Shown here: piece after piece, positions 61-43,782 of the stretch | Layout of the letters: each line of letters opens with the position of its first letter | How positions within the stretch are numbered: position 1 is the first letter of the stretch | Origin: Mobula hypostoma | Lineage: Eukaryota | NCBI RefSeq assembly: GCF_963921235.1 | Contig: NC_086113.1 | Location: 25,048,001-25,112,000, forward strand | Direction of reading: 5' to 3' | DNA length: 64,000 nt | The notes under the pieces: model-generated | What the model was told of the DNA's origin: nothing | Database searches by the model: none | What the model saw: only the letters and a program-made list of their open reading frames with translations | Made by a program: the position numbers and the translations under genes

Positions 61-1527
61 ATTTCTTTATCTCTAAAGAAGAAGAGCCTAAAATAAGATC
101 ATTCTGATAGTTGATGTCTGTTCTTCTCAGTTTTTCTTTGGATAGATGTGTGTAATCCAGGTTAATGAAACCCAAAGATGTAATGTTAGAAAGCTCTATC
201 TGTGGAGGGATGAAAACGAGGTTTACAGAATTTAAAAAACAACTTGGGGAAAAGAAATGCTATTATGCGATAACGAGGCGTAGCTGATGCAGGCGTGGAC
301 ACGCAACAGAAACACAGCAAACTATTAGAAACTAAAGCTATAAACTGTTAAAAGTGGAATTAGTAGTGAGTATCTTTACTCTGCTTACTTGAAAACCTCA
401 GGGTGAAAACTTTGGAAGAGAGATGATATCGATAGAAGATTTATTGAAGCTACAGCTGTGACAAGCAGCAGCTATAGTGAGACTATATTGACAGAGACGG
501 AGGTCAAGATCTCTACCATGTGACCAGGAATTAGTTCTGTTAAATCATATCAAGGGATCTGGTGAGTTAAAATACTTTTATTGTTCTGATTGTATAATTC
601 GTGTGTGAAATATGCTCAGTAGTGTTGTAACCAAGGAATGTTTAGAAATGACAATGTGAAATTGAGTTATTTTGAAATAGAAAATGGAATGAGTATAAGA
701 ACTTATGGATTGTAATCCTGTTACATAAGGTCAGTTTTTTTTGTGTAAGTACTATTAATTGATTTTCTGTGGATGACCCAGCATTTCATCTAACAAACCA
801 AGGAACAAAACGAGCCACCCAAGATCGACTAACCAGCGCGGGAATGAAACGTTTTGTGATGAAGAGGATTTAATTCAGTTGGATGTATGTTTATTTTTCA
901 TTCAAAGGATCTTAATTTGATTTTCTAGAAGAACTGATTATTTTTGCAAAGACTTTGGTAAGTTACTGAATGAGATTTACTTCATTTAAATGTTGTTATA
1001 TTGGAGAATTTGTCGTGAAAGAAATAAAGCTATATATATACAGGAGCTGAATTTAAATTTGTAGACATGTTGACCTGAAGCTGAAACTGAAGTTAATTAT
1101 AATACTTAAATAGGAATTCGATTGGTTTCCTAACTAACTAGTGATAACGAAAAAGGCAAATGTCAGTCTGTAGACTTTAAAATAGGGAATAACACTAGAT
1201 CGAATTAGTTGGAGAAATTGGAGTGATAAAGGTTATTCTAATGAATCTCATTGATTCTAACTAAAAAGGAATTTGTTTTTTGTTTGATATCTGACATTTG
1301 GAACATAAGACAAAACATTGAAATTTTGAATCGTTCTTGCTCATGTTAATATTTTGTATATATTGCTGATTTTTTATAAACAAACTTACTTCTAGAAGTG
1401 TTTGTTTTCTATTCACTGCCTCCTTCTGATACCTAGAGCTTCTGCTGGCCTACTAGCACCTAATGCAGTACTATGTAATTTGATTTTCTCATAAAGAGTA
1501 CGGCGATCAGTCACACGAGATAAGACA
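57..1527 (+). mobile_element. Putative long solo LTR / ERV-like segment, unclassified
   Basis: Cuts the Rex fragment abruptly. TG at 57 and ...GAGATAAGACA at 1527, TATA-like run 1031-1040, retained CpGs (268-303, 811-851, 1501-1517), several GTRAG donors. No TSD or PBS found. Confidence 0.4.
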
Positions 1528-1575
1528 AGCACTACACTGGTATTACATGTGCTAACAAAAGAAAAGTTTAACAGA

Positions 1576-1910
1576 CAATGTTCCCTCCAATTTGTAATGA
1601 CCAGAGTGTGCAAAAATCTTGTGCTGTGCAAGTTTTTGCTCAGTGACAACAACATGTGTGCACTGTATCACTTCTTCAATAAAAACAGTATAAGTAAGCC
1701 AATTCTAAAATCTGTAGAAATATCATTGCAAACTCCATGTTGTCAACACCGTCTGCATCAGAAACAGGAAAGGGAAATGTAATTATGTATGATTGTGAAA
1801 TATACTTAACATGCCAGTGAGGTAAAAGGTGACAACCTTTCGTGCACAATTTAGATTCTTCTGTGTGCCAGCAGCAAAAGATGCATGTGGTCATCTTAGA
1901 GGGACAATTG
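1576..1910. mobile_element. Non-autonomous hAT DNA transposon (MITE), 335 bp
   Basis: Imperfect TIRs CAATGTTCCCTCCAA (1576-1590) and TTAGAGGGACAATTG (1896-1910); 8-bp TSD TTAACAGA (1568-1575) / TTAACAAA (1911-1918), the hAT-typical length. Confidence 0.8.
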
Positions 1911-2174
1911 TTAACAAATATATTCTTAACTCTCTTCCTGGCACTACAACACTAATGCCAGCAACAATTCGCTCTTCTTCACCAAACATCAAGTTCCTTC
2001 CCTTCCCTCTTTTTTTATCTTGGGTCAGTAAGAAAACTATTCATATAAAGGGGAAGGTAGAGCCATAAATTTTTGGTAATGGTTCATTTAGAAGCCTGAT
2101 TTTTTACTGGCTTCAGGTAGAAAGTAAAGTTGAAAGGTACAAAGGTACAAATACAAGAGAGACGTCATTCATAA

Positions 2175-2560
2175 GGGACCTTACATATCACTCCAAAGTT
2201 CTTTACAATCAATGAAATATAAGATTAGTTATGGATGTAACATGTCAGTGAACTTCAGATCATCAACAGCTTCAAAAAAGCAATAAGAGAAATAGTCAAG
2301 CCATCTGCTTTTAGTAATCCTGGTTGAGGGTTACCATTTGGTAAAAATACAGAGAACACTCTTACCCTTCTTCTAAATTCAATCGAAAAAAATGGCTAGT
2401 GTCTTTTTTTAACATTTTATCTAAAACTTCTCACATCCATCTAAAGAACACTCCCTCAGTTCTGTACTGAAGGCTCAGCTTGGATTTTGTGCCAAAGTTC
2501 CTGGAGCAGAACTTAAAGTCTATAATTTTCAGTAGTAAGAATGTTACCTACTAACCAAGT
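2175..2560 (-). mobile_element. Old Deu-domain SINE (SacSINE1-like); boundaries approximate
   Basis: Degenerate match to the same family at 14870-15200, 34262-35772 and 61535-61892 (e.g. TGGTTGAGGG, CTCCCTCAGT...CTGAAG, tRNA-like head at the right end). Confidence 0.5.
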
Positions 2561-4396
2561 TTGGATAATTCTAGCAATCCTCATCAATGTTGCACCCAAT
2601 ATAGAGTGTCACTGATTTTCTACTTTACTTTCTCCTGACTGTTTATGCCCATCTTACTATAATTTCTAGATTCAACCTAGAGACAAAAGGGAGAACCAGT
2701 GTTAGTCACATCAGTTCCATGAGCAATACCTGGGAGAGGACTGTAATTCAGAAAACCTAAAGCTGATAACAGTGCAATTAATTTCTTGCTTCAGGTGGGC
2801 TCTGTTTTCCCTTCTTTGGTACCTTGTGAATCAAACATTCTGAATTACAAACTCAAATCCAATTATCATTCAGTCAAGAAACAAAATCTCTCCTACTATT
2901 TAACAAGGTTTAGCTGAATTGCACAACAGACTTGCATATTATATTCCTTTGGGTTAAATGATAATCATGAAACCTATTAAAGTATTAATAGTCAGTTTTA
3001 TCTTTCAGTCATTTTTTTCCTTATTAAATTCAAATTTAAATGATATCCCAGGTGCTCCTTATCTTTTTGATTCCTCTCTTGTCTTGAGGTTTCATGCTCT
3101 ATGTCTCTAATGAAACTGTCCTAAATGTCAAGTATTTTCATCTGTATCCTCCTCCATAAGATTTAACGCTCCTAGATTATCAGCTCCATTTGTCTCCCTC
3201 CATTATCTTTTCTTTTCTCTCTAGTGTATTTCCCTTTCCAAATCAGCAAAGGAATTTTCCTGCAACCAGCACCACACTAGTATATACAATATACATTGGT
3301 GGATCATCGTTTGTGATTTACTTCTGTGTAGAAGTCACACTTAATCCAGGTAATCTAATTCTTCCTCTCCTTATATGGAAAAGGTTGCACTTTTGCTCCC
3401 CACCTGAGAGAGCCAGCTATTGAGATAGTAGGTTTGCTGATAGAATAGTCATTGACTTGAAACACTATTTTTTCACTCTACTATTCTATCTGTTGGACAT
3501 TTCTTTCTTTGTTTGAAGAATATCGATGAGTGACTGAGTTTATTAGCATTGTTTCTTTGTGAAGACTGTTGTGAATTCAAGTTGACATCCAATGCATCTA
3601 TAGATTACTTCCGAAACTGAACAACATCTTAGTACAAGCATTAGTGCACATAAATTTGATACCTATGGGAAGGTATTTACATTCTGCTGTGTCTATGATT
3701 ATACTAGATTCAACATCAAACTACAGTTTTTATACACTTGATACATCATGTAAAAGGAAATTTGTGGCATTCCAGCATTCTGCAATTTTATTTGAAAGCA
3801 TTGATTTTGTATAATTCTTTTATGAATGTAATTCATGGTGGTAGGCATCTGTGAAAGGGAGAAAATTCAGCAAGTTGAGTCTCTTCTAATAATCCCCGTG
3901 GATGGAAATAATATTGAAAAATTAATATTTTTAATAAAAAGTTTTGAAATGTTGCAGAAAATAAATTTCTGACAATCAATTCATGCAAAAGACCTCCAGC
4001 AAAGCAGCTGTCAAATGTAGAACTCTTCAAACCAATTCTACCTCTGTCTCCTCAGTCCGTGAGGGAACGATCTAAGAAAACTTCACATGCCACAAGCCTT
4101 TGGGAAAGTGAAAAGACTACTCAGTCCATTGGGCCTTTTGCAGATAGAATAGATTCATTCTTCTTAAGTCGTTTATTTGGCCCAAAAAGTTGAAGCTAAC
4201 TTTTTCGTTTACCATCACTCAGATTTAACTCTAGAATGCATGTCAAAGCATTTAGTATTATTATTACCCATGTCTTGTTATTTTGTTTAGTTGGTAATGA
4301 TTGAATGTCACCCATTCAGTAGCATCTTGACCATTTTTTCTTTTTTTTATCATAATTAACGCTCAAAAAAATACTGGAGGAACTCGGCAGGCTAGG

Positions 4397-11224: not shown

Positions 11225-13276
11225 CCATAAGACCATAAGGCAAAGGAGCAGAAGTCAGCCATTCGGCCCATCGAGTCTGCTCCACCATTTTATCATGAGC
11301 TGATCTATTCTCCCATTTAGTTCCACTCCCATGCCTTCTCACCATAACCTTTGATGCCCTGGCTACTCAGATACCTATCAATCTCTGCCTTAAATACACC
11401 CAATGACCTGGCCTCCATTGCTGCCCGTGGCAACAAATTCCATGGATTCACCACCCTCTGACTAAAATTGTCTTCGCATTTCTGTTCTGAATGGGTGCCC
11501 TTCAATCCTTAAGTCATGCCCTCTCGTACTAGACTCCCCCATCATGGGAAACAACTTTGCCACATCCACTCTGTCCATGCCTTTCAACATTCGAAATGTT
11601 TCTATGAGGTCTCCCCTCATTCTTCTAAACTCCAAGGAATACAGTCCAAGAGCAGACAAACGTTCGTCATATGTTAACCCTCTCATTCCCAGAATCATTC
11701 TAGTGAATCTTCTCTGTACCCTCTCCAACGTCAGCATATTCTTTCTTAAGTAAGGAGACCAAAACTGCCCACAGTACTCCAAATGAGGTCTCACCAGCGT
11801 CTTATAGAGCCTCAACATCACATCTCTGCTCCTATACTCTATTCCTCTAGAAATAAATGCCAACATTGCATTCGCCTTCTTCACTACTGACTCAGCCTGG
11901 AGGTTAACCTTAAGGGTATCTTGTACGAGGACTCCCAAGTCCCGTTGCATTTCCGAACTTTGAATTCTTTCCCCATTTAAATAATAGTCTGCCCATTTAT
12001 TATTTCTGCCAAAGTGCATAACCATATACTTTCCAACATTGTACTTCATTTGCCAATTCTCTGCCCATTCTTCCAATCTATCCAAGTCTCTCTGCAGACT
12101 CTCCATTTCCTCAGTAGTACTGGCCCCTCCACCTACCTTCGTATCATCAGCAAACTTAGCCACAAAGCCATCTATTCCATAATCCAAATAGTTGATGTAC
12201 AATGTAAAAAGAAGCAGCCCCAACACAGACTTCTGTGGAATACCACTGGTAACCAGCAGCCAACCAGTATAGGATCACTTTATTCCCACTCTCTGTTTCC
12301 TGCCAATCAGCCAACGCTCTATCCAAGTATGTAACTTTCCCGTAACTCCATGGGCTCTTGTCTTGTTAAGTAGCCTCATGTGTGGCACCTTGTCAAAGGC
12401 CTTCTGAAAATCCAAATGTCCAACATCCACTGCATCTCCCTTGTCTAGCTTACTGGTAATTTCCTCAAAAAATTGTAATAGGTTTGTCAGACAGGATTTT
12501 CCTTTAAGGAATCCATGCTGAGTTCTGCCTAGCTTGTCATATGCCTCCAGGTACTCTGTAACCTCATCCTTGACAATCGACTCCAACAACTTCCCAACCA
12601 CCGACGTCAAGCTAACAGGTCTATAATTTCCTTTTTGCTTCCTTGCCCCCTTCTTAAATAGCGGAGTGACATTTGCAATCTTCCAGTCCTCCGGAACCAT
12701 GCCAGAATCTATCGACTTTTGAAAGATCATCGCTAATGCCTCCGCAATCTCCACACCTACTTCCTTCAGAACATGAGGATGCATTCCATCTGGTCCGGGA
12801 GATTTATCTACCTTTAGCCTATTCAGCTTCCTGAGTACTTTCTCTATCGTAATTGTGACTGTGCACACTTCTCTTCCTTGCCACCCTTGAGTGTCCGGTA
12901 TACTGCTGATGTCTTCCTCAGTAAAGACTGATGCAAAATACTCGTTCAGTTCCTCTGCCATCTCCTTATCTCCCATTACAATTTCTCCAGCATCATTTTC
13001 TATCGGTCCTATATCTACTCTCACCTGGCTTTTACTCTTTATATACTTGAAAAAGCTTTTAGTATCCTCTTTGATATTATTTGCTAGCTTCCTATCATAG
13101 TTAATCTTTTCCCTCTTAATGACCTTCTTGATTTCCTTCTGTAAGGTTTTAAAAACTTCCCAATCCTCTGTCTTCCCACTAATTTTTGCTTCCTTGTATG
13201 CCCTCTCCTTTGCTTTAACTTTGGATTTGACTTCTCTTGTCAACCATGGTTGCATCCTTTTTCCATTCGAAAATTA
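11225..13276 (-). mobile_element. CR1 LINE, 5'-truncated, young; RT plus 3' UTR
   Basis: ORFs 12275-13255 and 11462-12226 are in the same frame, split by one nonsense codon; motifs KSPGPDG, NYRPVSLTS, LDFQKAFDKV, FADDTK. Frameshift near 11465; (CTTATGGT)n tail; possible CATTA TSD. Confidence 0.97.
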
Positions 13277-15278: not shown

Positions 15279-16737
15279 GTGAGTTGCACAGACAATTCTC
15301 AAAGCAGTAGCTGACTTGTCCGCATATTCTGGATGCAAATAGTACCTGCCAGGGACTCGAACCGTTGATCCTTAGTGAATGCCATGCAGTGCAGGTGCCA
15401 ACAGCTGTTGTCAACTTTTACAATCGGTCACTCTGGCATCAAAAATCAATAACTTTTTACTGCTGCTTTGGGAGGTGATTGGCCAGAAATGAGAAATGGG
15501 AACTTGGACAGCTGGTCAGCAGTCTGTTGATTTTTTCCTTTTGTGGTCCAGTATAATTAGAGTTACTAAGACCAGCCAAAATGCTGATCTTCTAGTTGCA
15601 TATTAATGTTGAAGTCCTATCCTCAGGCACTAGCCCATCTGTATACCCAGCAATAATCATTAAGGAGGAAAGAAGAAATCTTTGGCACCATGTGCACTGT
15701 CCAGTTAAGGGATTTTATCATATGGATCAGAACGTGGGGTCAGTGGAGAAGCCACCATGCTCATTTTTGATCCCCAAGAAAGTTATCTGCAAAGAAGTAA
15801 TTGCCTCTGCAGGGAGAACTTCTCTTTTCCTGGTGATTGCTGCTGTCAGGTGTCAATTCAATAGAACCCATCATTGTCTAGCAAGCCTGTGTTGCCAAAA
15901 GTAATATAATGCAGATGCTGGAAATCTGAAATAAAATGCTCAAGGTGTTTAATAAATCAATTAGCAGCTCTGGAAAACAAGATCAACATTCCAGGCTGAT
16001 CACCTTTCATCCATTTGAGCAAAATATTATGACATACTGAGAGCTAATGATAGAAACATGTATATAATATCAAAAAAGACATTCAAATGTATAAATATAC
16101 TTAATAACATAATATAAAACTATTTTAAATACCACTATAGTTTTTAATTTCTTCACATAAATATTTCAATATACATACATGAAATTCATTCTTGTAGAGT
16201 GAGTTTATATTCTAATTGTACTATCCTGGCAAAGGGAAGCTCAACACACTTAGAGCCAAGCCATAAATTTTCAGTTTTCATCGGTCTTGTGTATAGTCTA
16301 AATGTATCAATTTATTTGACTTCTCTTGACTGTGGTGGTGACAGTTGCAAATAGGACAGTCTATGGAGTCAACCAAATGATTTAAAGGAACTTTGGAACT
16401 TTCATATTAAATGACACATGTGTAGAAATCCCAAAGAATGCTGTGTGTTTCACTGACTGATGATAGCTTACACCAATAATTCCTTATCACTACCACAATA
16501 GGACAAACGAGATACATAACATTCCTAAGATAACACCAGATCCATAAATTTGACAGGGAAGAAGTGCTATTGTTAACTAAATTGGGTAGAATGAAGAATA
16601 AGAGAATGCATTCACCCCACTTTACTGGATCATGACAGTAATTGATTGCTAAATCCAGGTATTCCTATGGTTAAAACAATTAGGACTAACAGAAGTGTTT
16701 TCTGCATGCAGGAAAAGTAACTAACACTTGTAGGAAA

Positions 16738-16774
16738 GGTCCTGACGAAGGGTCTCGGCCTGAAACGTCGACTG
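16738..16774 (+). ncRNA. Minimal type I hammerhead ribozyme with intact core
   Basis: GGTC-CTGACGA(16742-16748)-A-GGGT(CTCG)GCCT-GAAAC(16762-16766)-GTC^-GACT. Helix III is the loopless palindrome ACGT; predicted cut after 16769. Confidence 0.8.
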
Positions 16775-16835
16775 CACCTCTTCCTACAGATGCTGCTTGG
16801 TCTGTTGCGTTCACCAGCAACTTTGATGTATGTTG
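16741..16835 (+). mobile_element. 95-bp Penelope pLTR-derived insertion carrying a hammerhead
   Basis: Perfect 14-bp TSD CTTGTAGGAAAGGT at 16727-16740 and 16836-16849. Confidence 0.9.
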
Positions 16836-17554
16836 CTTGTAGGAAAGGTGTTAACTTTTAAGCCCAAATCTATGTTTAAATGAACAACAGATGCAGCATT
16901 CTACAAAATTGATAACCTCAGAAGTGGGAAATCCTAACTTGTCTTCTAGTCCTGTGAATTGGTTCATTAAATTTCCCCTCTGGATGACAAAGTTTTAACT
17001 GGAAACAAAACTACCAGTCTCATTTCCCCTCTGTCTCTATGCTCTGGGGATTTCTTGTTCTTGTTAGCACCTGTATGGACAGATTTTGTAATTGGCAACT
17101 CCCACGGAGCAATGATCTGTGTTGAAGGCAAAATGGAAAATCACATCTAAATATGTTATCAAACTTGTAGAAATCAATAAACTATCAGCAATAACAAAAT
17201 ATTGCATTTAAAATGCGTATTTAGCATTGCAAAAATATCTCAAGCTGCTTCGTAAAAGTAGTAACAAAAAATTGGAACCAAGCCTCACTAGAAGATAATG
17301 AGGCCAAATAAATATTAAGGAGTTTGGCTTGGGGATAGTGGGAAAGGGACGTAGAGAGGATTTGGGATGACATCAAGAAACATAGAATCAATCTGATAAT
17401 TAATGAACTGAAGTTCTTTTTTATAGCTATCTACCAAAATGCATCCAACAATTTCATTAGTGGCTCCTTATTACAGCTTACAAAAGCAGTTGGCATTCTA
17501 TGCAAACTGAAAATTACTTGAGGTTAAAAGGGCTACAAATATAAGCATGAAATA

Positions 17555-18238
17555 TTCAAAGGTTTCAAAGGTACATTTAATGTCAGAGGAATGTATACAA
17601 TATACATCCTGAAATGCTTTTTCTTCGCAGCCATCCATAAGAACAAAGGAGTGCCCCCAAAGAATGAATGACAGTTAAATGTTAGAATCCCAAAGACCCC
17701 CCCCAGCTCCCCCCTCCCACGTGTAAGCGGCAGCAAGCAACATTTCTCTCCCCCCAGCAAAAAAAACGCATCGGCACCCACCACTGAGTACTCAAGTTTG
17801 CAACAAGGCAACAGCAGAGACACAAACTTGCAGTACCCCAAAGACTACTTGTTCACCAGGTATTCTACATACCGCAGGCTCTCTCTCTCCCTAATAAGGG
17901 AAAAAGAGCTATCTCCGTTTCACAGCAAGAGGGGAGACATAACAAACAACTCACTAGTTTACAATGTTAAAAGTCTGTTGCATCGCTTTTTCCGAGCTCT
18001 GAACCCAAAGATCTCAGGTCACTGGGCACACAGCCTTAGATCTTCCAACTCCCACAACACACTGATCTTCTGTTGGGACACTGACCTTTGATCCACCCGT
18101 CTCCAGAGCCACGGGATCTCGGACCTCCGAAGATGTGCTAAATTCTTAGTCCGCACCTTGGAATGTTGAATAATAGCCAGTCATGAAACTGCCTATTCCC
18201 ATTCCTGCAAAGAACCAAAGTCAGCGTGTAACTCCAGA
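17555..18238 (-). mobile_element. Unclassified non-coding retroposon with (CCTTTGAAA)n tail
   Basis: Minus-strand end ACATTAAATGTACCTTTGAAACCTTTG; homologous to 5345-6045. Confidence 0.75.
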
Positions 18239-18426
18239 TCTTATCAAGTATTCTTATCATTATACTCTTGAAGTTTTGCTTTTAACAATGGTACAATCAA
18301 GAAACAATCATAATGTTTTTCACTAAACTTTTGTCGAATGAATAACCAAATAAATTTTGAACAACTGGCTCTGCTTTTTAATTAAGATTAGTTTGAATTT
18401 AAACAACTGTACTTAAGAACTTTACT

Positions 18427-18562
18427 AGTCATGCTGAAAGGTCTCAGCCTGAAACGTCGACTATACTTTTTTCCATAGATGCTGCCTGGCCTACTTATTT
18501 CCTCCAGCATTTTGTGTGTGTTGCTTGGATATCCAGCATCTGCAGATTTTCTCTTGTTTGCG
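18427..18562 (+). mobile_element. Penelope pLTR-derived short insertion with degenerate hammerhead
   Basis: AGTCATGCTGAAAGGTCTCAGCCTGAAACGTCGACT...TCCAGCATCTGCAGATTTTCTC. Confidence 0.8.
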
Positions 18563-18730
18563 TCTAAGGATCCCTAGTCCAGCTCTAGAACACATGCAAG
18601 TTCTCAGCATCATGGCATACCATAGTTTACAGAAACTACGATATGCACAGTGATAAAAAATAAAATCCTAAAATGCCATAAGTGCTTCCAGCTTACAAGC
18701 CATTTGTTGAGGAGAAGCTCATTTAAGCCA

Positions 18731-18855
18731 GACGAAGGGTCTCGGCCTGAAACGTCGACTGCGCCTCTTCCTATAGATGCTGCTTGGCCTGCTGCGTTCA
18801 CCAGCAACTTTGATGTATGTTGCTTGAATTTCCAGCATCTGCAGAATTCCTGTTG
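18731..18855 (+). mobile_element. Penelope pLTR-derived short insertion truncated inside the hammerhead core
   Basis: Starts GACGAAGGGTCTCGGCCTGAAACGTCGACTG; TSD TTTAAGCCA (18722-18730) / TTTAAACCA (18856-18864). Confidence 0.85.
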
Positions 18856-19347
18856 TTTAAACCATATTTTTATTTTCTTCCAAATGCAAGTGCAAATTTT
18901 TATCTTTTTAAGGTTTTTGAGCAGGTCTTTTGGTTCAGAGCTGGACTTGAAAAGCAATACTATCATACACTTATCCTCACATTTCCCTGAAACACTTTTC
19001 TCTTAGAAATCAATCAGTTCCTTCCTGAGTGCCCTATTATAAAAACTGAACCAACATGATGGTCAGTATGGTCAAGTACTGACTGTATCAAGTTGCACCG
19101 CTATTACATTTCCCTGCTATAAGTTCATAAACCATAATGAATCCTCATGGTCACTGAATCCGTTGTATTGATACTCTGGCATATATGATAATACAATGCA
19201 GGTCTTATTGGTTAGAATTTTGGGGGTCCATGTATGGCAACTATATTAGGAAGTAGTTGAAGTCATGGAAAGTTCCCAATTTTTTTTCCCAACTACTTCT
19301 CATCCACCTTCCAAAGAACTCCAATGGATTTAAAGAGATTTGGGATG

Positions 19348-19768
19348 TATTAGGTAAAGTCCGTAAAGGAGCCGAACGGTCCAAAGCTGGAGATAAACAG
19401 GTATTAAGATCTCCGCCCCAAATCAATGAAAACTCGTTCAAATTCGGAAACTGATCAAACAATGATTTATAAAATTCCGGACAATCCATATTAGGAGCAT
19501 AAACATTAACCAAAACTACTTTTTTATTAAATAGTAAACCACTAACCAATAAAAATCTACCATTCGGATCAGAGATAATATCCTGTTGTATAAAAGTAAC
19601 TGAGGAATCTATAAAAATAGAGACGCCTCGAATCTTAGCATTGGAGTTCGAATGAAATTGTTGTCCCTTCCAGAATTTGAAAAAACGTAGTCTGTCCCCC
19701 CTCTGTACATGGGTCTCTTGTAAAAATAAAATTTGTGCTTTAAGTCTCCGGAACACTTTAAAAACTTT
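19348..19768 (-). pseudogene. L1 ORF2 APE-endonuclease N-terminal part (inverted segment)
   Basis: KVFKVFRRLKAQILFLQETH...DPNGRF...NVYAPN...GGDLN...DRS..LRTLPN within ORF 19241-19828. Confidence 0.95.
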
Positions 19769-22700
19769 ACCTAATAAATCTGCAAATTTGATTAATTTTT
19801 TCCTTTCTGATTCTGGGTCGACGGACATTTGGCGTTTTCTGCATCCTCAGGAAAAAGATTTTTCCTTTTTTTCACATGTTCATCATTCCTATTCAAGAAT
19901 TGATTATTTTTTTATTGATTCTCGTCTCATTCCTTCAGTGATTAAATGTGATTATGATTCTATAACCATTTCGGATCATGCTCCACTTAAGCTTTCTATT
20001 AAAATTATGGCCAATATACCAAACAATAGACAATGGCGTTTTAATTCGCTGTTGTTTCAGGACTCGGACTTTGTTAATTTTATGAATGAACAGATTGAGC
20101 TTTTTTTTACAATTAACCATACAGAAGATATTTCGGTTAACACTCTTTGGGACACTTTTAAAGCCTATATTCGGGGTCAGATTATTTCGTATTCCGTTGC
20201 TTTGAGGAAGAAACAGAAGCAGGAGGAGATGGCAATTGTGGACAAGATTAAAGAAATTGATAAGAAATATGTTATGGCTCCTTCTGAGGAGCTATACAAA
20301 CAAAGAACTGAACTTCAAATGGAACACAGTTTACTACTCTCGTCCTCGATTGTAAACCAATTAAAGAAAACAAGAAGTGATTTTTATGTTCACAGTGATA
20401 AAATTGGCAAGCTGCTGGCTAATCAATTGAAATCTAATTATGTTAAATCTCAAATCAATCAGATTTATAACCAAAATGATCGATTGATATTGGATCATGT
20501 GGGGATTAATCAAACCTTTTGTGATTTTTATTCTTCTTTATATCAATCAGAGTCTCCTCGAGATTCTAAATATATGAATGATTTTTTAGATAAGTTAGAC
20601 TTTCCTCAGATTTCACAGGATATGTCTTCTTTATTAGATACTTCCATTACAATGGATGAGATTAAGAATGTTATTTTTTCTATGAATCTGGGGAAAGCTC
20701 CTGGCCCTGATGGGTTTACCGTTGAATTTTATAAATGTTTTGCTTCTTTATTGATTCCTTGGCTCTATAAGGTTTTTGAGGCTTCTTTGAAACTTGGTAA
20801 ACTTCCGGAATCTTTTAATAGAGCATCAATTTCTTTAATACTAAAGAAGGATAAAGACCCTGCTCAATGTGCATCTTATAGACCAATATCTTTATTAAAT
20901 GTTGATTCTAAAGTTTTTTCTAAGTTATTAGCAAATAGACTAGAAAAAGTACTTCCTTCTATTATTTCGGAAGACCAAACGGGTTTTATTAAAGGTCGTT
21001 ACTCTTTTTATAATATTCGTACATTGTTAAATATCGTTTATACTCCCTCACAAAATGTTCCTGAGTGTGTTATTTCTTTAGATGCCGAGAAAGCTTTTGA
21101 TAGAGTAGAATGGCCTTATTTATTTAAGGTGCTTGAAATGTTTAATTTTAGCTTGAAATTTATATCCTGGATTAAACTGTTATATCACTCCCCTGTAGCC
21201 TCGGTTCGTACTAACTCTTTAAACTCACCTTTTTTTCCTCTCTTTCGTGGTACTCGACAAGGCTGTCCTCTTAGTCCCCTATTATTTGATATTGCATTAG
21301 AACCTCTTGCAATTGCTATTCGAGAATCTTCAAATATTACTGGGATAACTCGGGGATTAAAGTCCCATAAATTATCACTCTATGCTGATGATTTACTTTT
21401 ATATATTTCTAATCCTGAGAGATCTATTCCTGTTGTTTTAGAGTTATTAGCACAATTTGGTCTTTTCTCAGGTTATAAATTAAATCTTAGTAAGAGTGAA
21501 CTTTTTCCGATTAATAAACATCTTCCCTTATATTATAAATTTCCATTTAAATTGATTAATAATTACCTTTCATATCTTGGGATTAAAATTACTTGTAAAC
21601 ATAAAGATTTATTTAAGACTAACTTTTTACCATTAATAGACCATATTACTCAACTTTCATCTAAATGGTTTCCCTTATATTTAACTTTGATTGGTCGTAT
21701 TAATGCAGTTAAGATGTTTTTTTTGCCAAAATTTTTATATGTGTTTCAGGCATTACCAATTTTCGTTCCTAAATCTTTTTTTGATAAAGTCGACTCTAAA
21801 ATTTCTTCATTTATTTGGCAGAATAAGAATCCGAGACTGGGTAAAATACATTTACAGAAAGCTAAGAGAGATGGAGGTTTAGCATTACCTAACTTTAGAT
21901 TTTATTATTGGGCTATTAATATTCGACATATGAAATTTTGGTTACTTGACCGGGATATACTATCTATTCCTAAATGGGTAGCATTGGAATTACAATCTGT
22001 TCAGGGTTATACACTTGGTTCTATTTTAGGTTCATCTCTTCCTTTTGATTCGAAACGCCTTAAGCAGGTCTCTAACCCGATCGTTAAATATGCTTTGCGT
22101 ATTTGGTTTCAATTCAGAAAATTTTTTGATCTTAATCAATTCGGGTTAGCGATTCCTATTTTAGGTAACATATTTTTTCCTCCCTCTTTTACGGATCGCG
22201 CTTTTCAAACTTGGAAGACTAAGGGTATTTTACGGTTTTTGGATTTATTTTTAGATGGTTCCCTTATGTCTTTTGAACAATTATCTAATAAATATAACTT
22301 ATCAAGAATACATTTTTTTAGATATTTACAAGTTAGAAATTTCCTAAGTACTATACTTTCTTCCTTTCCAATGCTTCCTCCTATATATATTTTAGATTCG
22401 ATAATTAACCTTAATCCATGTCAGAAAGGTGCATCGGCTATGATTTATAATATTATTATGAAACTTAGGAAAGCTCCATTTGATAAGATTAGGGTAGATT
22501 GGGAACAGGAATTGGGGCTTACCATTTCTGTGGATGATTGGGGGCAGATTTTACAATTAGTTAATACTTTCTATTTGTGCTAAACATTCCCTAATTCAAT
22601 TTAAAGTGGTGCATAGAGCACATATGTCCAAAGATAAGTTAGCGCGTTTTTACTCGCATATTAATCCTTTCTGTGATAGATGTTCGGGGCAGATAGCCTC

Positions 22701-23064
22701 TTTAACTCATATGTTTTGGTCTTGCCCTACTTTGGAAACTTTTTGGAGAGATATTTTCAATATTATTTCTAAGGTATTAAATATAGATATCTCTCCTCAC
22801 CCTATTACTGCTATCTTTGGACTACCTAAAATTTCTAGTAATCTTTCCCCTTCAGCCCGTAGAATGATTGCATTTCTTACTTTAATGGCGAAAAGATGTA
22901 TTTTACAACATTGGAAAGAGCTTAATGCTCCAACTACCTTTTTTTGGTTTTCTCAGACGATTTTATGTTTGAATCTGGAGAAAATTAGAAGTAACCTTTA
23001 TGGTTCTTCATTTAAATTTGAACAGATTTGGGGACCTTTTATTCGATATTTTCATTTAATGTAA
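19764..23064 (+). pseudogene. L1 ORF2: EN C-terminus, RT and CCHC domain; one frameshift at ~22569
   Basis: SRIDYF, SDHAP, KAPGPDG, LDAEKAFD, GTRQGCPLSP, YADD, and CDRC..HMFWSC in 22606-23064. Restoring 2 nt gives VNTSSICAKHSLIQFKVVHRAH. Confidence 0.95.
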
Positions 23065-24455
23065 TATTTACCCTTCTTGTTTTTTTTTCACTGTTTTAAT
23101 GGAGGTCGGGATTGAGGACGTGATTTTAAGTTTAACTCTGTTTGGTTTCAAGTTAGCCCATTGCTTTGCTTTGCTTTTAGTTAGTTGCACGGTGGGTTTT
23201 TTTTTGGGGGTTTTTTTTTCTTTTTTTCCATTGATATATATAAAATCTAGTATACTATTATGTTATCTTGGTTTCTTATGCTTAAATTACATTGTTTGTA
23301 GTATTTTCTTTTTGGTATTGTTATCTTTTGGAATTTTATTATACTTTAACATTGTATTAATGTTTATATGGCTTACCTTTTTTGTATACTTACTCAATAA
23401 AAAGATTTAAAAAGAAAAAAGTAAAGAGATTTGGGATGACTTAGTGGGGTTGTGAAAGATATTGCTTGACTCTAATTTATTTTTTGTCTTTAAAAAGGTT
23501 AACATGGAAAGATTGGCGTATTCGAAAGAACACCACACATAAATTGCTGAAGGAACTCAGCAAGTCGGCAACGTCTATGAAGAGGAATAAGCCGTCAAAC
23601 TATTGAAAAGGAGTATGCCTACAAAACATTGTGAGATAAAAGGTGCCTGCATGATTGTGCATCATTCCAACAGTTGTTCACTTTGGTGGGCTGGCACTTC
23701 AAACCTTGCTAATGGGTCTCAAGTGTGTCCAGGTTGTTAATGGAAGTTTTTTTTTGCTTCATCCTGTATTTTCACAGGAAAATAAAACATCACAAACCAA
23801 GAACTGGAAGACTGGGGAGAGAAAAGTGGCCATTGGTTCACATTTGGGTTAAATGTGGAGTGGTATGGTCTATAAAGGAAAATCAGCACTAGGGGGTGCA
23901 AGTTCTGCCTAGAAATCAGTGATATGTGTTGGGATAGTGAGGGATTGCTGGAGGATCTGGGAGTTGAGGTGGTGAGACACTAGGAAGTTAGAGAGCTGGA
24001 GATTCAGTGTTTTGGGAAACTGTGTGGGAGGCGGGGGCAGCAGCTGAGTCATTTGGCATTTTGGGGCAAAGTAGGTGGGGATGGTCACTATTGGTATCAG
24101 CATGTTCCTGAAGGTAAATTATGGAACTTAACTTCACAGAGTGCCAGTGCAGTATTTCAGAATGAAAGCATACTTGAACCAAGCAAGATGAAGACTAATC
24201 ATTCTTAGTGTCTTGGCAGTATTCTAATTATGTTTGATTTGTGTCTGACATTCAAATTGTATCGGGCATATGGACATGGGGCTTGTAGTGAGATGTGTCC
24301 AACTGAATCTTCAGATTATTCTGTGTCATTACTTGGCGCAAGCCCTTGTGTTTCATTAACACAAAAGAATCCGAAATCTGCTGACATCACATTTCATTTG
24401 AGGAAAAATCTATTTTCAGTTGTACAATTGTACGATGTAAACACCACCACATAAT

Positions 24456-24714
24456 TGATGGTGTAGTGGCATCAGTGCCGGATTTTGGGACGATAGGTCC
24501 CAAGTTCAAATCCAGCCAGCTCCCCTGCACACTTTCCATCCGTGCTGGGTTACAAGCTGGTGATCTCTTTGGAAACTCACCTGGCAGAAGGAAATGGCAA
24601 ACCACTGCTGTAACTTGCCTCGTATGCGGTTCCCCACTACCTCAAAGAGGTGTGGAGGGAAATCGTCCGCTAACCAGAAGAATTCCGGATGTGATGTACC
24701 TTTCCTTTCCTTTC
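24456..24714 (+). mobile_element. tRNA-derived SINE with an RTE-like middle block and (CCTTT)n tail
   Basis: A box TGGTGTAGTGG (24459-24469), B box GTTCAAATCC (24504-24513), GCAGAAGGAAATGGCAAACCACTGCTGTAACTTGCCT, tail TACCTTTCCTTTCCTTTC. Confidence 0.8.
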
Positions 24715-26504
24715 ATATAAAAGCTCTTTCTTAATATAGTAAATATTAGAGAGGAAGGGACTATTACTGGGAGAGATGTTTGGAGGAAAGAACTATTTGA
24801 TTAAATATCCGGGAATAGGTCCAACTAGAACTGACAACGCTAGCTGGCAGTGATCAACCATCTTGTTATTGGTCAGAGCTGCCTCTTTTGAATCTGATTT
24901 GAAGCAGTTCACCCAATTATTGCTGAAATCTTGCGTTTCTTAGCACATCAGTTACTGAGTGAATAAACTGCTGAGCTACTCAAGGCCCCATATACATTTA
25001 TATTGTACTATAAGGTACTGTATAGATACCTAGATTTCTTCACTCTGTCATAAAGATGGATTTGGCTTTTATTTTAAAAACTTTATCTCTTCTGATCAGG
25101 TAGAACAGAAACGGGTTTCACCCAATGCACTGGGCATTTGTACACCAATATGTAAAGTACAATTTAAAAATTTGTAAAGGCCAGATTATATAATAGACTC
25201 TTGTTTGCTTCAAATATACCTTCGCTATCAATATACAGGTGTACTTGTACTTGTAAGGTAGTATTTGCACTTTTTGCCAACTCCAATCTAATCCAGGTTT
25301 CTTCATTCAATAATCAACATGTTGACATATGACTGATTTTATCTCAAAATCTTATTGTTTTAGTGATGAGAAAATGTGTTAAAATTGATGGTAATTGTCT
25401 AAGGGTATAGTGAGTCCGTTTTCAAGCAAACCGTTCAAATTATACATTCCCTAATGCCCCGAAGTAAAAATTATATCAGTAACCCACTTCATCTGACATA
25501 ATTTTATTAAGTAGCAGTGGAGCCCTGCTATCATACTAATTATATTGTCACTATTAAAGCCCATGATTTTACTATATCCAGCATGACACCTTTGCATTAA
25601 GAACTGACCTTGAATTTGCAGAGAACAGTGTGGTATTAAATCTTTCAAACCTATTTTCTCTGCGTATGGAAGTTCCAAGTTATTTGCTTTCATGATCTCA
25701 GTTACTGGTAAGGAAGCAATGGAGATGAGTATCACTGAGTCTGAACTAAAATGTTTCCTTCAATTGTGTCCATAGATTGCACAACTAAGAATTTGTATGT
25801 TTATCATTATGTGGGTCTTTTTTGCTTCCCAGACAATTTCCTCTTTCAGACCTGCAGAGCAGAGCACTCCCAGATTATTTAAAAATTGATTATTTTTTTG
25901 AATGGACAAGGTTTTCAGTCAAGGTGTTCTGAAGTTACCAGACAACAGAGAAGGAAAATTGAATTCCATTTTGTTATTTGTGACTATTACATTTTAGTAC
26001 CTGTTAGATCATATATGCATTATTGTGTGAAGTAATGAACACCAAATATCAGAAGAAATATATTTGTCTTTTCCTCAGTAAGGGTAGACAACCTTCAAAT
26101 TGATTCTCAAACAAGGAGAGAAAAGATTTATGTCAAAATTAGGTCCTGTTGCCATAGTGCCACACAGATTTTCTCTGCTATACTATCAGGACTCCAAGGA
26201 TTATATTTCTGAAGCGAGATTGCATTAGCCAGGTTTATAGTTCTGAAAAATAAAATTTTAGGCAGTGATTTGACTGGAGTTTTGAAAAAAAGAATTAATA
26301 GTGTTGAACCACTGGAAACTTTTCTTCTGGGAAAAGTGTCTCAGACCTTTAAACTGGGTTATTTAGGAGGAGCGTTTGGTACAGAAAGTGGAAGTGTACA
26401 TCATTCTTACCTTGAAATCTGCACATGCTGACGCTGATGATAATTTTTAAACTTTGAAAACTGAAAACCATTGGTAGCTGTTGGAATTAAGAAATCTGGT
26501 TCAT

Positions 26505-29263: not shown

Positions 29264-29669
29264 TTTTAAACAATATTTTATTGAATTTTACACATATTTC
29301 ACATATACAAATAAACAATAATAATAATTAAACTAAATAGTGAAACATGTTCTCATGTTTTTCACAATCATCGAAGGAAAAGAAATATAACATTTCACAT
29401 ACTTCACATATTTAACAAAGAAATAAAATAAAAACACATCAGAAAAAAAAACGTAGAAGCGCTCAACAGCACACAGCTATTTCACAATAAATGTGCACCT
29501 TGATGTCCAAGAAACTCCAATAAAGGTTTCCACACATTTTCAAATACTCCTGCCCTTCCTCTGGTTATGTAAGTCAGTCTCTCCAATACAATACAAGATG
29601 CCATCTCCTTCACCCATACATGAATCGAAGGTATATCCATTTTTCTCCAAGATAAGGCTATGATAGCTT
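29264..29669 (-). mobile_element. Second L1 family, heavily 5'-truncated (ORF2 C-terminus plus 3' UTR)
   Basis: KAIIALSWRKMDIPSIHVWVKEM...LERLTY...FENVWKP; AATAAA and A-tail on the minus strand; TSD TAACGCTGCTT (29253-29263) / TAACACTGCTT (29670-29680). Confidence 0.88.
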
Positions 29670-31037: not shown

Positions 31038-32496
31038 AGTGTATTATGACATATATGTACTTCGATAATAAAAAATTACTTTGACTTTGAATAGTTTCTT
31101 CATTAATCTGAGCAACTGCAAAGACTAAGTAACAACATAGACAATGATGCACAGAGTATATTCCTTCGACGAAGGATGCAAACGCTTGGAAATAAACTCT
31201 TTCATATAACCTTAGGCATAGAAACAGACTCTTCTTGATCATGTTGAATGGAGGAATAGGCTTGAGGAGACCAGATGGCCAACTTTTATTCCACTTTCTT
31301 GTAGATTCAGCCCACTAAGTCTGGACAAACCATTAAGCATCCACTTATATTAATTTACTTTTACTCTCTCCACATTCCTCTTGATTTCCTTCAGATTCTA
31401 ACACTTCCCTGCATACAATGGACAATTCTGCCAATCAAGAATCGAACCTGAATTTCTAGAGCTTTGTGGTAGCCACTTTATTCACAGTGCCTCCATGCCA
31501 ACCAAGAACTATGTGCTGAATACATTTGCTGACCTTCCTTTCCGTATTTCAGTCATACATATTTTTTAAGGTGGTATTTGATCTATTGTGTTTCAATTCC
31601 TCCATGATGGAGTACAGATACCTTAACAATACGTATGAATGAATTATGTCTGTTATCTTACGTCAGACTTTTGATGGACACCATGCACAAGACATATACT
31701 ATCACAGCCTCTTGCATTGCATTACCATATACACCAAAAATATATCAGTCCTTAGAAAGAATGATTACAGGTTATCAAAAAAATGTTAACAATTCTTGGC
31801 CCTACCATCTCAGTCCCAATATCATAAATGAAGTTAAGTTATGGATTAAGTTTTCTGACTTGATTTCTTCTTTTGTTGCTCCAAGGTTGATGGCTGGTTT
31901 TGACACACCTAAAATAACTCTCCTCAAAATATTACATTGCCCCTACAATCTCTTGGCAAAGAGCATTTGTTTATAAATGTCTATCATTTTTTTTATGGAA
32001 TACATAAACTTGTAGTCTAGTTTTATGCTGACCTTGAGGAAAGCTCTTTGAATGAAGTACAATGTCGTACTGCTGGTCATACTTAGCTACATTGCATTTG
32101 GCTACAATTGCCTTGTGATATGATGAGATCTTGACATGAGATTGTGGAAAATAAGTTCTTCTTCCTTCCCATTTCACATATCCAATCATCTTTATTTCTA
32201 TAGCAACAAACCAGAATCTTCCCCTTTGCGTGTTTATTGTGGCTCCTATTTATGATAGCTCTTCAGGCCAAGATGAACTATCAATTCCTGTGAGATCTGT
32301 TCATGCAACACCACAATTCTGCTGAACATATAAAACAAAAGATATGACACAACTCTTTTGAAGGTGTAGGATAATTTTCGAGGTGGTGTAATTCCTTTTC
32401 TGAATTAACAGACAATTAATAAGTGTTGTTTCATTTAATGTCATTAAATTACAGGTCATTATGATTTAGTACTGACAAAACTAATATCTTGAAATA

Positions 32497-32687
32497 ATAG
32501 CAACACACATAAAAAATGCCGGTGAACGCAGCAGACCAGGCAGCATCTATTGGAGGAGGTACAGTCGACGTCTCGGGCCGAAATGTCGACTGTACCTCTT
32601 CCTATAGATGCTGCCTGGCCTGCTGTGTTCACCAGCATGCTTTATGTGTGTTGCTTGAATTTCCAGCATCTGCAGATTTCCTCGTGT
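32497..32687. mobile_element. Fold-back (palindromic) Penelope pLTR insertion, 191 bp
   Basis: ~72-bp inverted arms at 32499-32570 and 32584-32655; 12-bp TSD TATCTTGAAATA at 32485-32496 and 32688-32699. Confidence 0.92.
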
Positions 32688-34465
32688 TATCTTGAAATAG
32701 TGTTTTTTTAAACAAATCTTATGCATTGTTTGTGATTAACATTATGTGACATTTAGTTAACAACTTGCCCTGATCTTTATGCAAACTACTGATTCTAGCA
32801 TTTAATGCATAGATATGGCCTAGATGAAAACTTGCATTCTGTTCGAAACTCTTACCAACTTAATCACTTCATTCAAGAAAAGAAGTAGGAATATGCCCTA
32901 TACCTATGGGTCAGTTAGTCTAATGTCAATGTTACAGAAAACATCGGAAAAAAATATCTCAGGTCCTTCTCCTCATCTCATCCATGCCAAATTAAACTAC
33001 ACTTAAAAACATGGGAATAGTCAGCAAGGATTTGTTGGTTGGAGATACTGCCTGACTAGTTTTCTTAATTTTGGTACAGCTAACTAAATATATATTGTGT
33101 AATTGATTGAATTATTTTCATTTCTCTCAAAAATATGCAGTTGAGGTAATTAAAATTAATTCTAAGTAGTGACTATTTTATATGGCACTCAACTCGATGG
33201 AAGAAAGTCAGATCAGGTATGCAGTACATTTAAAGAGAACCATTTCAATTTGGAAGCAAAAGTGCAACAAAATATAGAAACATTAAGATTTACTTTGGTG
33301 CCAAACGGTGACGGAGAAACCATACACCAAACTTAATTATAAATAAATAATAACAATTTGATGGATTGATATAGTAAAGGTGTGGCTGCTCTAGATGAAA
33401 GTGTGTTCACTAATCTAGCTGAATTGTTCGATCAGTTATTCTAGTGAACATTACTTAAGTCGTAGCTGTTGCAATTTACAGAATTTTATTCAACCTATAG
33501 ATATGCAAGTCAAACAGCATTCTTTCTCGTCAAACTGCTTAATGTTTTGACATCTGTTAACTTTAAGAATTAATTCAACCTCTTAAAAAAGCATAGGCTG
33601 TAGAGAGGGTTGCAGAACTGCAGGCTTTAAATAGGGCTCCTCGTTGGGAACACTGAAGTGCTAAATTTACATCTCACACTTGTTCATGCTGCTTCAGAGT
33701 AACTTATTTTAAAGTAATTAATATAGATGCCACTTATCCATGACTCTATCCATGATTCAATGACAAATAAGTACTGTCGGCAATGAATATTCACATGTAT
33801 ATGCAGTCATCCTTGAATAAAGAATTTTTGATACAAGACCAAAATTAGTATAACTTTAATATGATATTATTATGTGCATTTATTGCATTTAAATACATCT
33901 CAACACATAACAGCCTTTTATGCTGAAGTGCAATGAATTCATTTGTGTGATAAATTAAGTATGTATAAAAGCTACTTAAGGCAAATTGATCTAGGCCTGT
34001 TGCATAGCAAAGTCCCAAGCGTGTTAATTCTAACCATAAGACAACTGATTAAATACAGTAGATTAACTAATTGAAATCCATAAAACATTTATGTGAAGTT
34101 TCTGTCATTTGAGTTATATGCTTAGTATATTATTAGAATGTTTCCAATTTGTTTCTTGATGGGAACATTGCATGAATATTCACAACTAGCTACATACTAT
34201 GAAAGCAGCATCCATGGAAATGAAAAACAAAGTTACAGCAGATGCTGACAAAATAATAGGCCGGTAAATCTATAGCACCTTCCACATCACTTTCTGGTTA
34301 TCCTGAACATCACTGTGTAATCAATGAAATACTTCTGAGGTATAAGAAGGAGATAAAGCAAATAATTTGCATACCTGCTCCTACCAGCAGCTCTGTGCAA
34401 ATTACTCTTTTGGTGATGTAGGTCGAGGGATAAATATTGGTCGGGAGAGCCAAGATAACTCTACT

Positions 34466-40500: not shown

Positions 40501-41570
40501 TCTCAGGATCTTCTCCATCAACTTACCAACCACTGAAGTAAGACTCACTGGTCTATAATTTCCTGGGCTATCTCTACTCCCTTTCTTGAATAAGGGAACA
40601 GCATCTGCAACCCTCCAATCCTCTGGAACCTCTCCTGTCCCCACTGATGATGCAAAGATCATCGCCAGAGACTCAGCAATCTCCACCCTTGCCTCCCACA
40701 GTAGCCTGGGGTATATCTCGTCTGGTCCCAGTGACTTATCCAACTTGATGCTTTCCAAAAGCTCCAGCACATCCTCTTTCTTAATATCTACATGTTCGAG
40801 CTTTCAGTCTGCTGTAAGTCATCCCTACAATTGCCAAAATCCTTTTTCGTAGTGAATACTGAAGTAAAGTACTCATTAAGTACCTCTGCTGTCTCCTCCG
40901 GTTCCAAACGCACTTTTGCACTGTCACACTTGATTGGTCCTATTCTTTCACATCTTATCCTCTTGCTCTTCACACACTTGTAGAATGCCTTGGGGTTTTT
41001 CTTAACCCTGTCCGCCAAGGCCTTCTCATGGCCCCTTCTGGCTCTCCTAATTTCTTTGTTAAGCTCCTTCCTGCTAGCCTTATAATCTTCTAGATTTCTA
41101 TCATTACTTAGTTTTTTGAAACTTTCATAAGCTCTTCTTTTCTTCTTGACTAGATTTACAACAGCCTTTGTACACCCATGCTCCTGTACCCTACCATCCT
41201 TTTCCTGTCTCATTGGAACGTACCAGTGCAGAACTCCATGCAATTATTCCCTGAACTTTTGCCACATTTCTTCCATACATTTCCCTGAAAACATCTGTTC
41301 CCAATTTATGCTTCCAAGTTCTTGCCTGATAGCCTCATATTTTTCCTTACTCCAATTAAACACTTTCCTAACTTATCTGTTCCTATCCCTCTCCAATGCT
41401 ATGGTAAAGGAGATATAACTGTGATCACTATCTCCAAAATGCTCTCCCACTGAGAGATCTGACACCTGACCTGGTTCATTTCCCAATACCAGTACAGCCT
41501 CTCTTCTTGTAAGCTTATTGTGTCAAGAAACCTTCCTGAACACACCTAACAAACTCCATCCTATCTAAAT
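40501..41570 (-). mobile_element. Internal CR1 ORF2 fragment of a different subfamily, lacking its 3' end
   Basis: KNPKAFYKCVKSKR...AEVLNEYF.SVFT; KSLGPDEIYPR...NYRPVSLTSVVGKLMEKILR, then an abrupt stop in TA-rich filler. Confidence 0.9.
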
Positions 41571-42128
41571 AGATATATATTTCTTATTTAAACATATTAT
41601 ATTTTATGTATTGCACTGCCACCTATCAACTGATTTCATGACATATGACGATGATAATCAACTTGAATCTGATTCTGATTCTGAATTACAAACCAACATC
41701 ACGCTGTTCATTAAGTGGGAAATAATAAGAAATATGTACATTAGCACAGGCAACACCAAGGTCAGACTCAATGTCTCCCGTCGATGACGTTCATCAAAAT
41801 TGGATTTAAGCTTCTGTCTTGCTCTTGACCTTTATGATGATTTCATTCTGATAATGCTTGTGGTATTGTTCCTTGAAAGGATTTTTTTCAATGAGTTGAG
41901 AAAAGGGTAACAGAGGTTATGGAAATTTGAAGCTTTAATGAGTTTACCTTTGAGGATCAAAGTAAGACCAGGGGAAATCTTTTTTTTCAGTAAATACATA
42001 ATTCCAATGCATAAATTGCTCCTAATTCTGGAAGATTTGGATTGAGGGAAAAAAGAGATTATTCACTAGTCCATCAGTGTCTTTATCAACATCGAGACAA
42101 TGGACATTGCAACTTGCCTATCACCACA

Positions 42129-43782
42129 ATAGATGCCTTCTATGCCCACTTTGAAAGGGAGAACACAACGACATCTGTGAAGATCCCTTCTGCTTCTGAT
42201 GACCCTGTGATCTCTGTCTCAGAGGCCGATATTAGGCTGTCTTTAAAGAGAGTGAACCCTCGCAATGTGGAAGGTCCAGATGGAGTATCTGGCAATGCTC
42301 TGAAAACTTATGCCGACCAACTTGCGGAAGTATTCAAGAACATTTTCAACCTCTCACTGCTACAGGCGGAAGATCACACTTGCTTCAAAAAGGCAACAAA
42401 TATACCACTGCCTGAGAAGAATAATGAGAGCTGCCTTAATGACTATCTCCCAGTAGCACTCACATCTACAGTGATAAAACGCTTTGAGAAGTTGGTCATG
42501 ACTAGCCTGAAATCCTGCCTCAGTAAGGACCAGGACCCATTGCAATTTGCCTATCGCCACAATAGGTCAATTGCAAACACAATCTCAATGCTTCTCCACA
42601 CAGCGTTAGACCACCTGGACAACACAAACACCTAAGTCAGGATGTTGTTCGTCGACTATAGTTCAGCATTTAATACCATCATTCCCACAATCCTTACTGA
42701 GAAGTTGCAGAACCTGGGCCTCTGTACTCTCTCTGCAATTAGATCCTTGACTTCCTAACCAGAAGATGCAACCTGTGCGGATTGGTGATAACATACCCTC
42801 CTCGCTGACAATCAACACTGACGCACCTCAGGGGTGTGTGGTTAGCCCACTGCTCTACTCTATATATACACATGACTGTGTGGCAAGGCATAGCTCAAAT
42901 GCCATCTATAGATTTGCTGACGATACAACCATTGTCAGTAGAATCTCAGGTGGTGACGAGAGGGCATACAGGAGTGAGGTATGCACACTTGTGGAGTGGT
43001 GCCACAGCAACAGCCTGGCACACAACAAAAGAATACATACCAATCCCCATAGAGGGATCAGAAGTGGAGAGAGTGAGCAGTTTCAAGTTCCTGGGTGTCA
43101 AGCTCTCTAGGGATATAACCTGGTCCCAGTATGTCAATGTAGTTATAAAGAAGGCAAGGCAAGGACTATACTTCATTAGGAGTTTGAAGAGATTTGGCAT
43201 GTCAACAATTACACTCTATAGGTGTACCGTGCAGACCATTCTGACAGTTTGCATCATGGTCTGGAATGTGGGTTGGGCGGGGGGGTGGGGCGGGGTTGCT
43301 ACTGCACAGGACCGAAAAAAGCTGCAGAAGGTTATAAATCTAGTCAGCTCCATCTAGGGTACTAACCTACAAAGTACCCAGGACATCTTCAGGGAGTGGT
43401 GTCTCAGAAGGGCAGCATCGATTATTAAGGACTTCCAGCACCCAAGACATGCTCTTTTCTCACTGTTACCATCAGGTAGGAGGTACAGAAGCCTGAAGGC
43501 ACACACTCAGTGATTCAAGAACAGCTTCTTCTCCTCTGACATCCAATTCCTAAATGCACATTGAACCCTTGAACACTACCACACTTTTTTAATATACAGT
43601 ATTTCTGTTTCTTGCACATTTTAAATCTATTCAATATAAATATACTGTAATTAATTTACTTATTTATTTGTTATTTTTTTTTCTCTTCTACATTATGTAT
43701 TGCATTGAACTGCTGCCGCTAAGTTAACAAATTTCACGTCACATGCCGGTGATAATAAACCTGATTCTGATTCTGATTCTGA
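42129..43782 (+). mobile_element. Rex1/Babar LINE, 5'-truncated, RT pseudogene
   Basis: EGPDGV, NDYLPVALTS, DPLQFAYR, APQGCV.SPLLYS.YTHD, FADDT; (ATTCTG)n tail; small deletion near 43025. Confidence 0.93.

Follow-up and report, generated by a model that had tools for sequence, protein, structure and literature searches.

A 64,000-nucleotide stretch of the genome of Mobula hypostoma (NCBI RefSeq assembly GCF_963921235.1, contig NC_086113.1, positions 25,048,001 to 25,112,000 of the forward strand) contains a 5'-inverted insertion of L1, a long interspersed nuclear element (LINE), which is flanked by two copies of a 17-bp target-site duplication (TSD) at 19331-19347 and 23422-23438. (This whole stretch is referred to as the window, and positions are counted from its first letter.) Within the insertion, the 5' portion of the element lies on the minus strand and is followed by the rest of the element on the plus strand. 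Judged from the sequence, this arrangement is most probably (at a probability of roughly 0.9) the product of one retrotransposition event of a young L1-clade LINE that was resolved by twin priming. An earlier note on this DNA, which was made from the letters alone, had proposed the same mechanism; this interpretation is now supported by the TSD pair, the collinearity of the two segments, their 13-nt overlap, the microhomology at their junction, and an empty site in a related organism.

Architecture of the insertion and its uninverted relatives

The L1 insertion occupies 4074 bp between the two TSD copies. These copies are identical at 17 of 17 positions, and a search of both strands found the 17-mer TAAAGAGATTTGGGATG only at these two places in the 64-kb window. 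The features of the insertion are given below, together with the comparisons from which each was drawn. In this list, P0002 is a full-length relative of the protein encoded by open reading frame 2 (ORF2), and L001 is a 6.6-kb contig (1-6613; ptg001341l of the public ENA assembly ERZ21784934) that was used as a natural, uninverted reference. Sequence contigs from four runs were placed on 18700-24100; organism A is probably the source of the assembly, and organism B is a related organism from another study and another sample.

19331-19347, no strand: 5' copy of the TSD, 17 bp, TAAAGAGATTTGGGATG (identical to 23422-23438; single copy in the contigs of organism B)
19348-19768, minus strand: antisense L1 segment, 421 nt, ORF2 endonuclease residues ~23-162 (Pfam, P0002, human endonuclease and L001 alignments)
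19348-19360, minus strand: inverted copy of the 13-nt stretch, TATTAGGTAAAGT (exact reverse complement of 19764-19776; same L001 columns)
19764-19768, no strand: microhomology ACTTT, 5 nt, at the inversion junction, common to both segments (other family copies; start of the sense 13-mer)
19764-23064, plus strand: sense L1 segment from ORF2 residue ~159 to the natural stop, with the end of the endonuclease, the reverse transcriptase and the C-terminal zinc-knuckle region (open reading frames, Pfam, human ORF2p, tblastn)
23065-23421, plus strand: 3' untranslated region (UTR), AATAAA (23396-23401) and a short, interrupted A-rich tail (23402-23421) (direct reading of the sequence)
23422-23438, no strand: 3' copy of the TSD, 17 bp (match to the 5' copy and to the contigs)

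Translation of the minus strand over 19348-19768 yields KVFKVFRRLKAQILFLQETH...DRSAPLRTLPN, and translation of the plus strand from 19764 yields TLPNKSANLINFF...; both agree with the earlier reading of an endonuclease N-terminus that ends in LRTLPN on one strand and a frame that resumes at 19764 on the other. The inverted repeat that had been described at the two ends of the antisense segment is likewise exact, the 13-mer ACTTTACCTAATA at 19764-19776 being the perfect reverse complement of 19348-19360. There is no A tail on the antisense segment itself, whose L1-3' end abuts the 5' TSD directly (...GGGATG/TATTAGG, 19347/19348). The insertion represents 4066 nt of one L1 RNA; the 421 nt at its 5' end are inverted, and a stretch of 13 nt was copied into both segments.

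On the plus strand there are two open frames, 19677-22583 (968 codons) and 22606-23064. A frame break near 22569/22570 leads to a stop at 22581-22583, and the remainder of ORF2 continues in another frame (22606-23064); apart from this single break, ORF2 has no stops. Everything upstream of ORF2 codon ~23 is missing. Because it has no 5' UTR and no ORF1, and because its endonuclease domain is split, this copy is dead on arrival.

The minus-strand piece matches the Pfam family Exo_endo_phos (E=1.1e-6; 29 bits, cutoff 24.5) and the structures of the human L1 endonuclease, 1vyb and 2v0s, over residues 37-157 (E=3e-13), while the remainder of the endonuclease domain, matching 1vyb residues 162-237, is on the sense segment. 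The sense segment also contains RVT_1 (E=2e-38). A zf-RVT match in its C-terminal piece is weak (E=4.3e-4; 21.3 bits, under the 27.5 cutoff); in tblastn, this C-terminal region is 49% identical to P0002 residues 1095-1256. The sense protein matches human ORF2p (8sxt) over residues 162-899 with E=3e-151, but R2 proteins with only 1e-24. Taken together with the match to the human endonuclease, this difference places the element in the L1 clade.

The segments were compared with relatives in which no inversion is present (all comparisons were made to natural copies). The antisense piece aligns to P0002 residues 23-155, extrapolating to 162, and the sense piece begins at about residue 159; with P0002 as the query in tblastn, its residues 162-1097 and 1095-1256 are covered by the sense segment. 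The same order is seen against human ORF2p, in which the antisense piece corresponds to 37-157 and the sense piece to 162 onward. L001 carries a related L1 with ~70% DNA identity, whose ORF2 is present as a 1004-aa piece followed by a 112-aa zf-RVT piece. Its positions 219-556 align to 19730-19394 on the minus strand of the window and its positions 592-3891 to 19766-23057 on the plus strand, and a three-way alignment places the ends of both window segments on the same 13 columns of L001. As aligned, the two segments are therefore collinear, with the same overlap, in two natural uninverted relatives and in human ORF2p.

The relatives also fit the host. The top matches in the databases are L1-type ORF2 proteins of about 1260-1280 aa. 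The closest of those with an organism name (P0003; 70% identity) comes from the stingray Hypanus sabinus, and teleost L1s are next, at 45-49% identity. These relatives, as judged by sequence, fit a cartilaginous fish, and more exactly a batoid, as the host; the earlier suggestion of a non-mammalian L1 in a cartilaginous fish is borne out.

Outer junctions and the empty site

Contigs of organism A cover both ends of the insertion. One spans 18833-19377 and another 23397-24100, both at single-copy depth and with 0 differences from the window. As expected of de Bruijn unitigs, the contigs of organism A stop where high-copy L1 sequence starts. (The 3'-junction unitig starts at 23397, which means that the 30-mer 23397-23426, comprising the tail and the first 5 bases of the TSD, occurs elsewhere in the genome; another copy with the same tail and a TAAAG-type target may exist.)

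In organism B, two contigs, X5 (1756 nt) and X6 (1738 nt), join 19330 directly to 23422. They represent an exact empty site with one copy of the 17-mer; the empty allele that the earlier note had looked to other individuals or species to provide is present in a related organism. Over 1148 aligned bases, the flanks in organism B show 29 differences from the window (~2.5%), and there is one 3-nt indel. Three things follow from this empty site: the TSD is real, both L1 segments arrived between the same two nicks, and the insertion is either younger than the split between A and B or polymorphic.

A further idea, that the empty site rebuilds the tail of a short interspersed nuclear element (SINE), found no support. 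The target lies in a single-copy unitig and has no other copy in the window. In blastn against the rest of the window, the rebuilt empty site matched two places only: 18728-18858, well away from the target, and 23535-23598, a weak fragment of another repeat that lies ~96 bp downstream of the target. Searches with Rfam and ARAGORN over 16000-25500 gave no relevant tRNA or Rfam signal. The match at 18728-18858 belongs to a high-copy short repeat that ends at ~18858 (its summed depth is in the millions) and that has copies at 16741-16839, 18436-18559 and 32488-32688; at E<=1, Rfam detected no hammerhead within 16000-25500.

Probable twin priming and its alternatives

Insight into how the two segments were joined comes from other copies of the family. 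Contigs of these copies agree with the antisense segment as far as 19768, after which they read TTTCCTTTTAATAGG, whose reverse complement encodes ...PIKRK/KVFKV of the ORF2 N-terminus. ACTTT (19764-19768) is consequently native to the antisense segment, and since it also starts the sense 13-mer, it belongs to both segments, as had been claimed. The junction microhomology is 5 nt long and is bounded by a mismatch on either side. At the other end of the target, the bottom strand of the empty site reads 5'-...CATCCCAAATCTCTTTA/AATCC-3', which places the first nick at TTTA/AA. The canonical L1 nick site is TTTT/AA, so the site here is one base off.

From these features, we infer as follows in what order the strands were nicked and how priming and annealing took place. 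The L1 endonuclease would have nicked the bottom strand at the TTTA/AA site, and the resulting 3' end would have primed at the A-rich 3' end of the L1 RNA, yielding a first cDNA of 3658 nt that extended up to the L1 position corresponding to 19764. The top strand would then have been nicked 17 nt downstream, after ...GGGATG, and its 3' end would have paired weakly (through GAT, with the terminal G mismatched) with an internal site on the same RNA. The second cDNA, of 421 nt, would have run toward the 5' end of the RNA and ended near ORF2 codon 22-23. Because the first cDNA would have passed the second priming site by 13 nt, these 13 nt are present twice, as the inverted repeat. Finally, the two cDNA 3' ends would have annealed on 5 nt (ACTTT/AAAGT), followed by fill-in and ligation. 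Among the features of twin priming that were tested, all are found in this insertion apart from primer/RNA complementarity, for which the sequence is only suggestive.

Several points weigh against this scheme or limit its reach. The earlier note had pointed to an imperfect match between the target end (...GATG) and the L1 antisense sequence (...GATT). Of the 4 bases, 3 do match, the exception being the one at the 3' terminus, but the match is weak: 3.7% of element positions match the last 4 nt as well or better, the energy of the primer duplex ranks only in the top 12%, and over longer stretches the site is unremarkable. Thus, the complementarity observed in these sequences is consistent with annealing and only suggestive, not evidence on its own. 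In addition, twin priming itself cannot be seen in a sequence, the two starts of reverse transcription being deduced from the architecture; and this is a single locus, from which no frequency can be obtained. The contigs also have limits. Those at the 5' junction extend 30 letters into L1 and those at the 3' junction hold 25 letters of the L1 tail, both short of the 31-letter rule for bridging, and the internal junction (19763-19769) lies inside high-copy sequence where it is bridged by no listed contig and rests on the assembly.

The family has very many genomic copies, so nested and adjacent copies are common, and the two segments might be ascribed to two independent events or two RNAs: a 5'-truncated L1 in the sense orientation and a separate antisense fragment that was nested in it, inserted next to it, or primed on a second RNA. 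However, the antisense piece has neither an A tail nor a TSD of its own; a single TSD pair surrounds both pieces, and the empty site lacks both. Moreover, the antisense piece at its 3' end and the sense piece at its 5' end coincide within 13 nt on an element of several kb (4,066 nt represented), an agreement estimated at ~0.5% by chance. A dual origin of this kind is very improbable.

The absence of a contig across the internal junction, which lies in a repeat, leaves room for a chimeric join of reads from two L1 copies. Nevertheless, the contigs that enter L1 by 30 and 25 letters at the outer junctions do so at single-copy depth with no difference, the sequences that meet at the internal junction have, as they are joined, just 5 nt in common (too little for an assembler overlap), the inverted piece, at 421 bp, would fit within any long read, and the breakpoints fit the L1 coordinate system exactly. 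An artefact that reproduced all of this is hardly to be expected. It is just as improbable that a simple 5'-truncated L1 was inserted and had its first ~400 bp flipped later by a chromosomal rearrangement. This would also give an inverted 5' part, and inverted repeats of 13 bp might in theory have mediated it. However, one breakpoint must then match the L1/TSD boundary exactly, a simple flip makes no 13-nt duplication, a flip through existing repeats presupposes that an inverted 13-mer, itself unexplained, already stood at the 5' end, and the related organism has an empty site rather than an uninverted copy.

Comparison with known insertions, and the L1 family of the ray

Twin priming was reportedly first put forward for mammalian L1 by Ostertag and Kazazian in 2001, and it has been documented almost only for mammalian L1. 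The ray copy resembles these insertions in that one TSD pair surrounds it, its 3' segment is in the sense orientation and ends in an A-rich tail, its 5' segment is antisense and derives from the part of the same L1 that lies just upstream, the junction has microhomology, and the first-strand nick site is of the T-rich/A kind. It is unlike them in its short, interrupted tail, in its nick at TTTA/A rather than the canonical TTTT/A, and in its batoid host, and its fish-type ORF2p is ~30-35% identical to that of human L1 (a value estimated from E-value and bit scores, not computed).

Quantitative data are available from human genomes and from cell culture. Long-read data from humans show 5' inversion in 18-22% of L1 insertions, and among human germline twin-primed L1s the cDNAs overlap in 42%, by a median of 12 bp (quartiles 4-17), with a median TSD of 13 bp (PMC12016303). 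The 13-nt overlap and the 17-bp TSD of the ray insertion are within the human twin-priming ranges. Likewise, the TSDs of 5'-inverted L1 inserts obtained in cell culture measure 10-20 bp, lengths near 15 being the most frequent (Yamaguchi, Kajikawa and Okada 2014, PMC4245944), a range that includes the ray TSD. In that work, 5' inversions were almost confined to human L1 in human cells; neither human L1 in chicken DT40 cells nor zebrafish ZfL2-1 produced any, and it was concluded that 5' inversion depends on both the host and the LINE species (PMC4245944). In contrast, the inversion described here is in a native L1 of a cartilaginous fish. Dual-priming variants (Meyer et al. 2010, PMC2837659) resemble the ray copy in the use of both target strands as primers. 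Those products have a 5' poly(T) and lack a second L1 fragment, whereas the 5' end of the ray copy is formed by an internal L1 fragment and is free of poly(T).

Among the 40 best-ranked of 106 papers on twin priming in the literature that was searched, and among those that also dealt with fish, zebrafish or non-mammalian systems, no description of twin priming by a native non-mammalian vertebrate L1 was found, although this is not proof of absence. The ray insertion is a clean but expected example of the process outside mammals. Its exact empty site and the fit of its TSD and overlap to the human distributions suggest that second-strand nicking, priming by the top strand and joining through microhomology have kept the same geometry over more or less the entire range of jawed vertebrates. 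In our estimation, it is about as likely as not that twin-primed 5' inversion regularly accompanies the integration of native L1 elements, and perhaps that of other LINE clades, in cartilaginous fishes. If so, the capacity for inversion would be ancestral to the L1/host systems of jawed vertebrates and not peculiar to mammalian L1 in mammalian cells, a dependence that the cell-culture work had suggested (PMC4245944). As one locus, the insertion is of value as a validated anchor for a genome-wide census rather than as a discovery in itself.

The element is young, as the earlier note had supposed, judging by its CpG content and its long open frame. Its ratio of observed to expected CpG is 0.72, compared with 0.31-0.37 in the 2-kb flanks and 0.28 in the whole window, and ORF2 has a 968-codon open frame and is open but for one frame break. 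A large share of the contig pieces placed over the element are at least 99% alike. The frame break is itself informative about the family. Two extra letters after 22569 that are present in many other copies are absent here, thereby breaking ORF2; in organism A, these two letters are inserted in about one third of the summed contig depth (51682/158615; 14 contigs), the sums being rough. Many other copies may therefore share the frame-breaking state, which would point to a subfamily that spread in spite of its defect.

Organisms A and B both carry this family in abundance, and its abundance in B indicates that it is older than the A/B split. In organism A, the summed depth over 19424-23405 (sums that are not copy numbers) is about three times as high at the 3' end as over the endonuclease part, which looks like the usual gradient of 5' truncation. 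No other copies of this L1 family were found in the window, where the element matched itself alone in blastn. With tblastn over the window, unrelated LINE reverse transcriptase fragments were found, as was a single short, diverged stretch of an L1 C-terminus (29509-29661, minus strand). The other LINE fragments with RVT_1 are at 11462-13255, 40504-44367 and 47857-48879; they are ~25% identical to L1 ORF2 and hence belong to other clades, and one open reading frame among them has an ALKBH8_N-type match.

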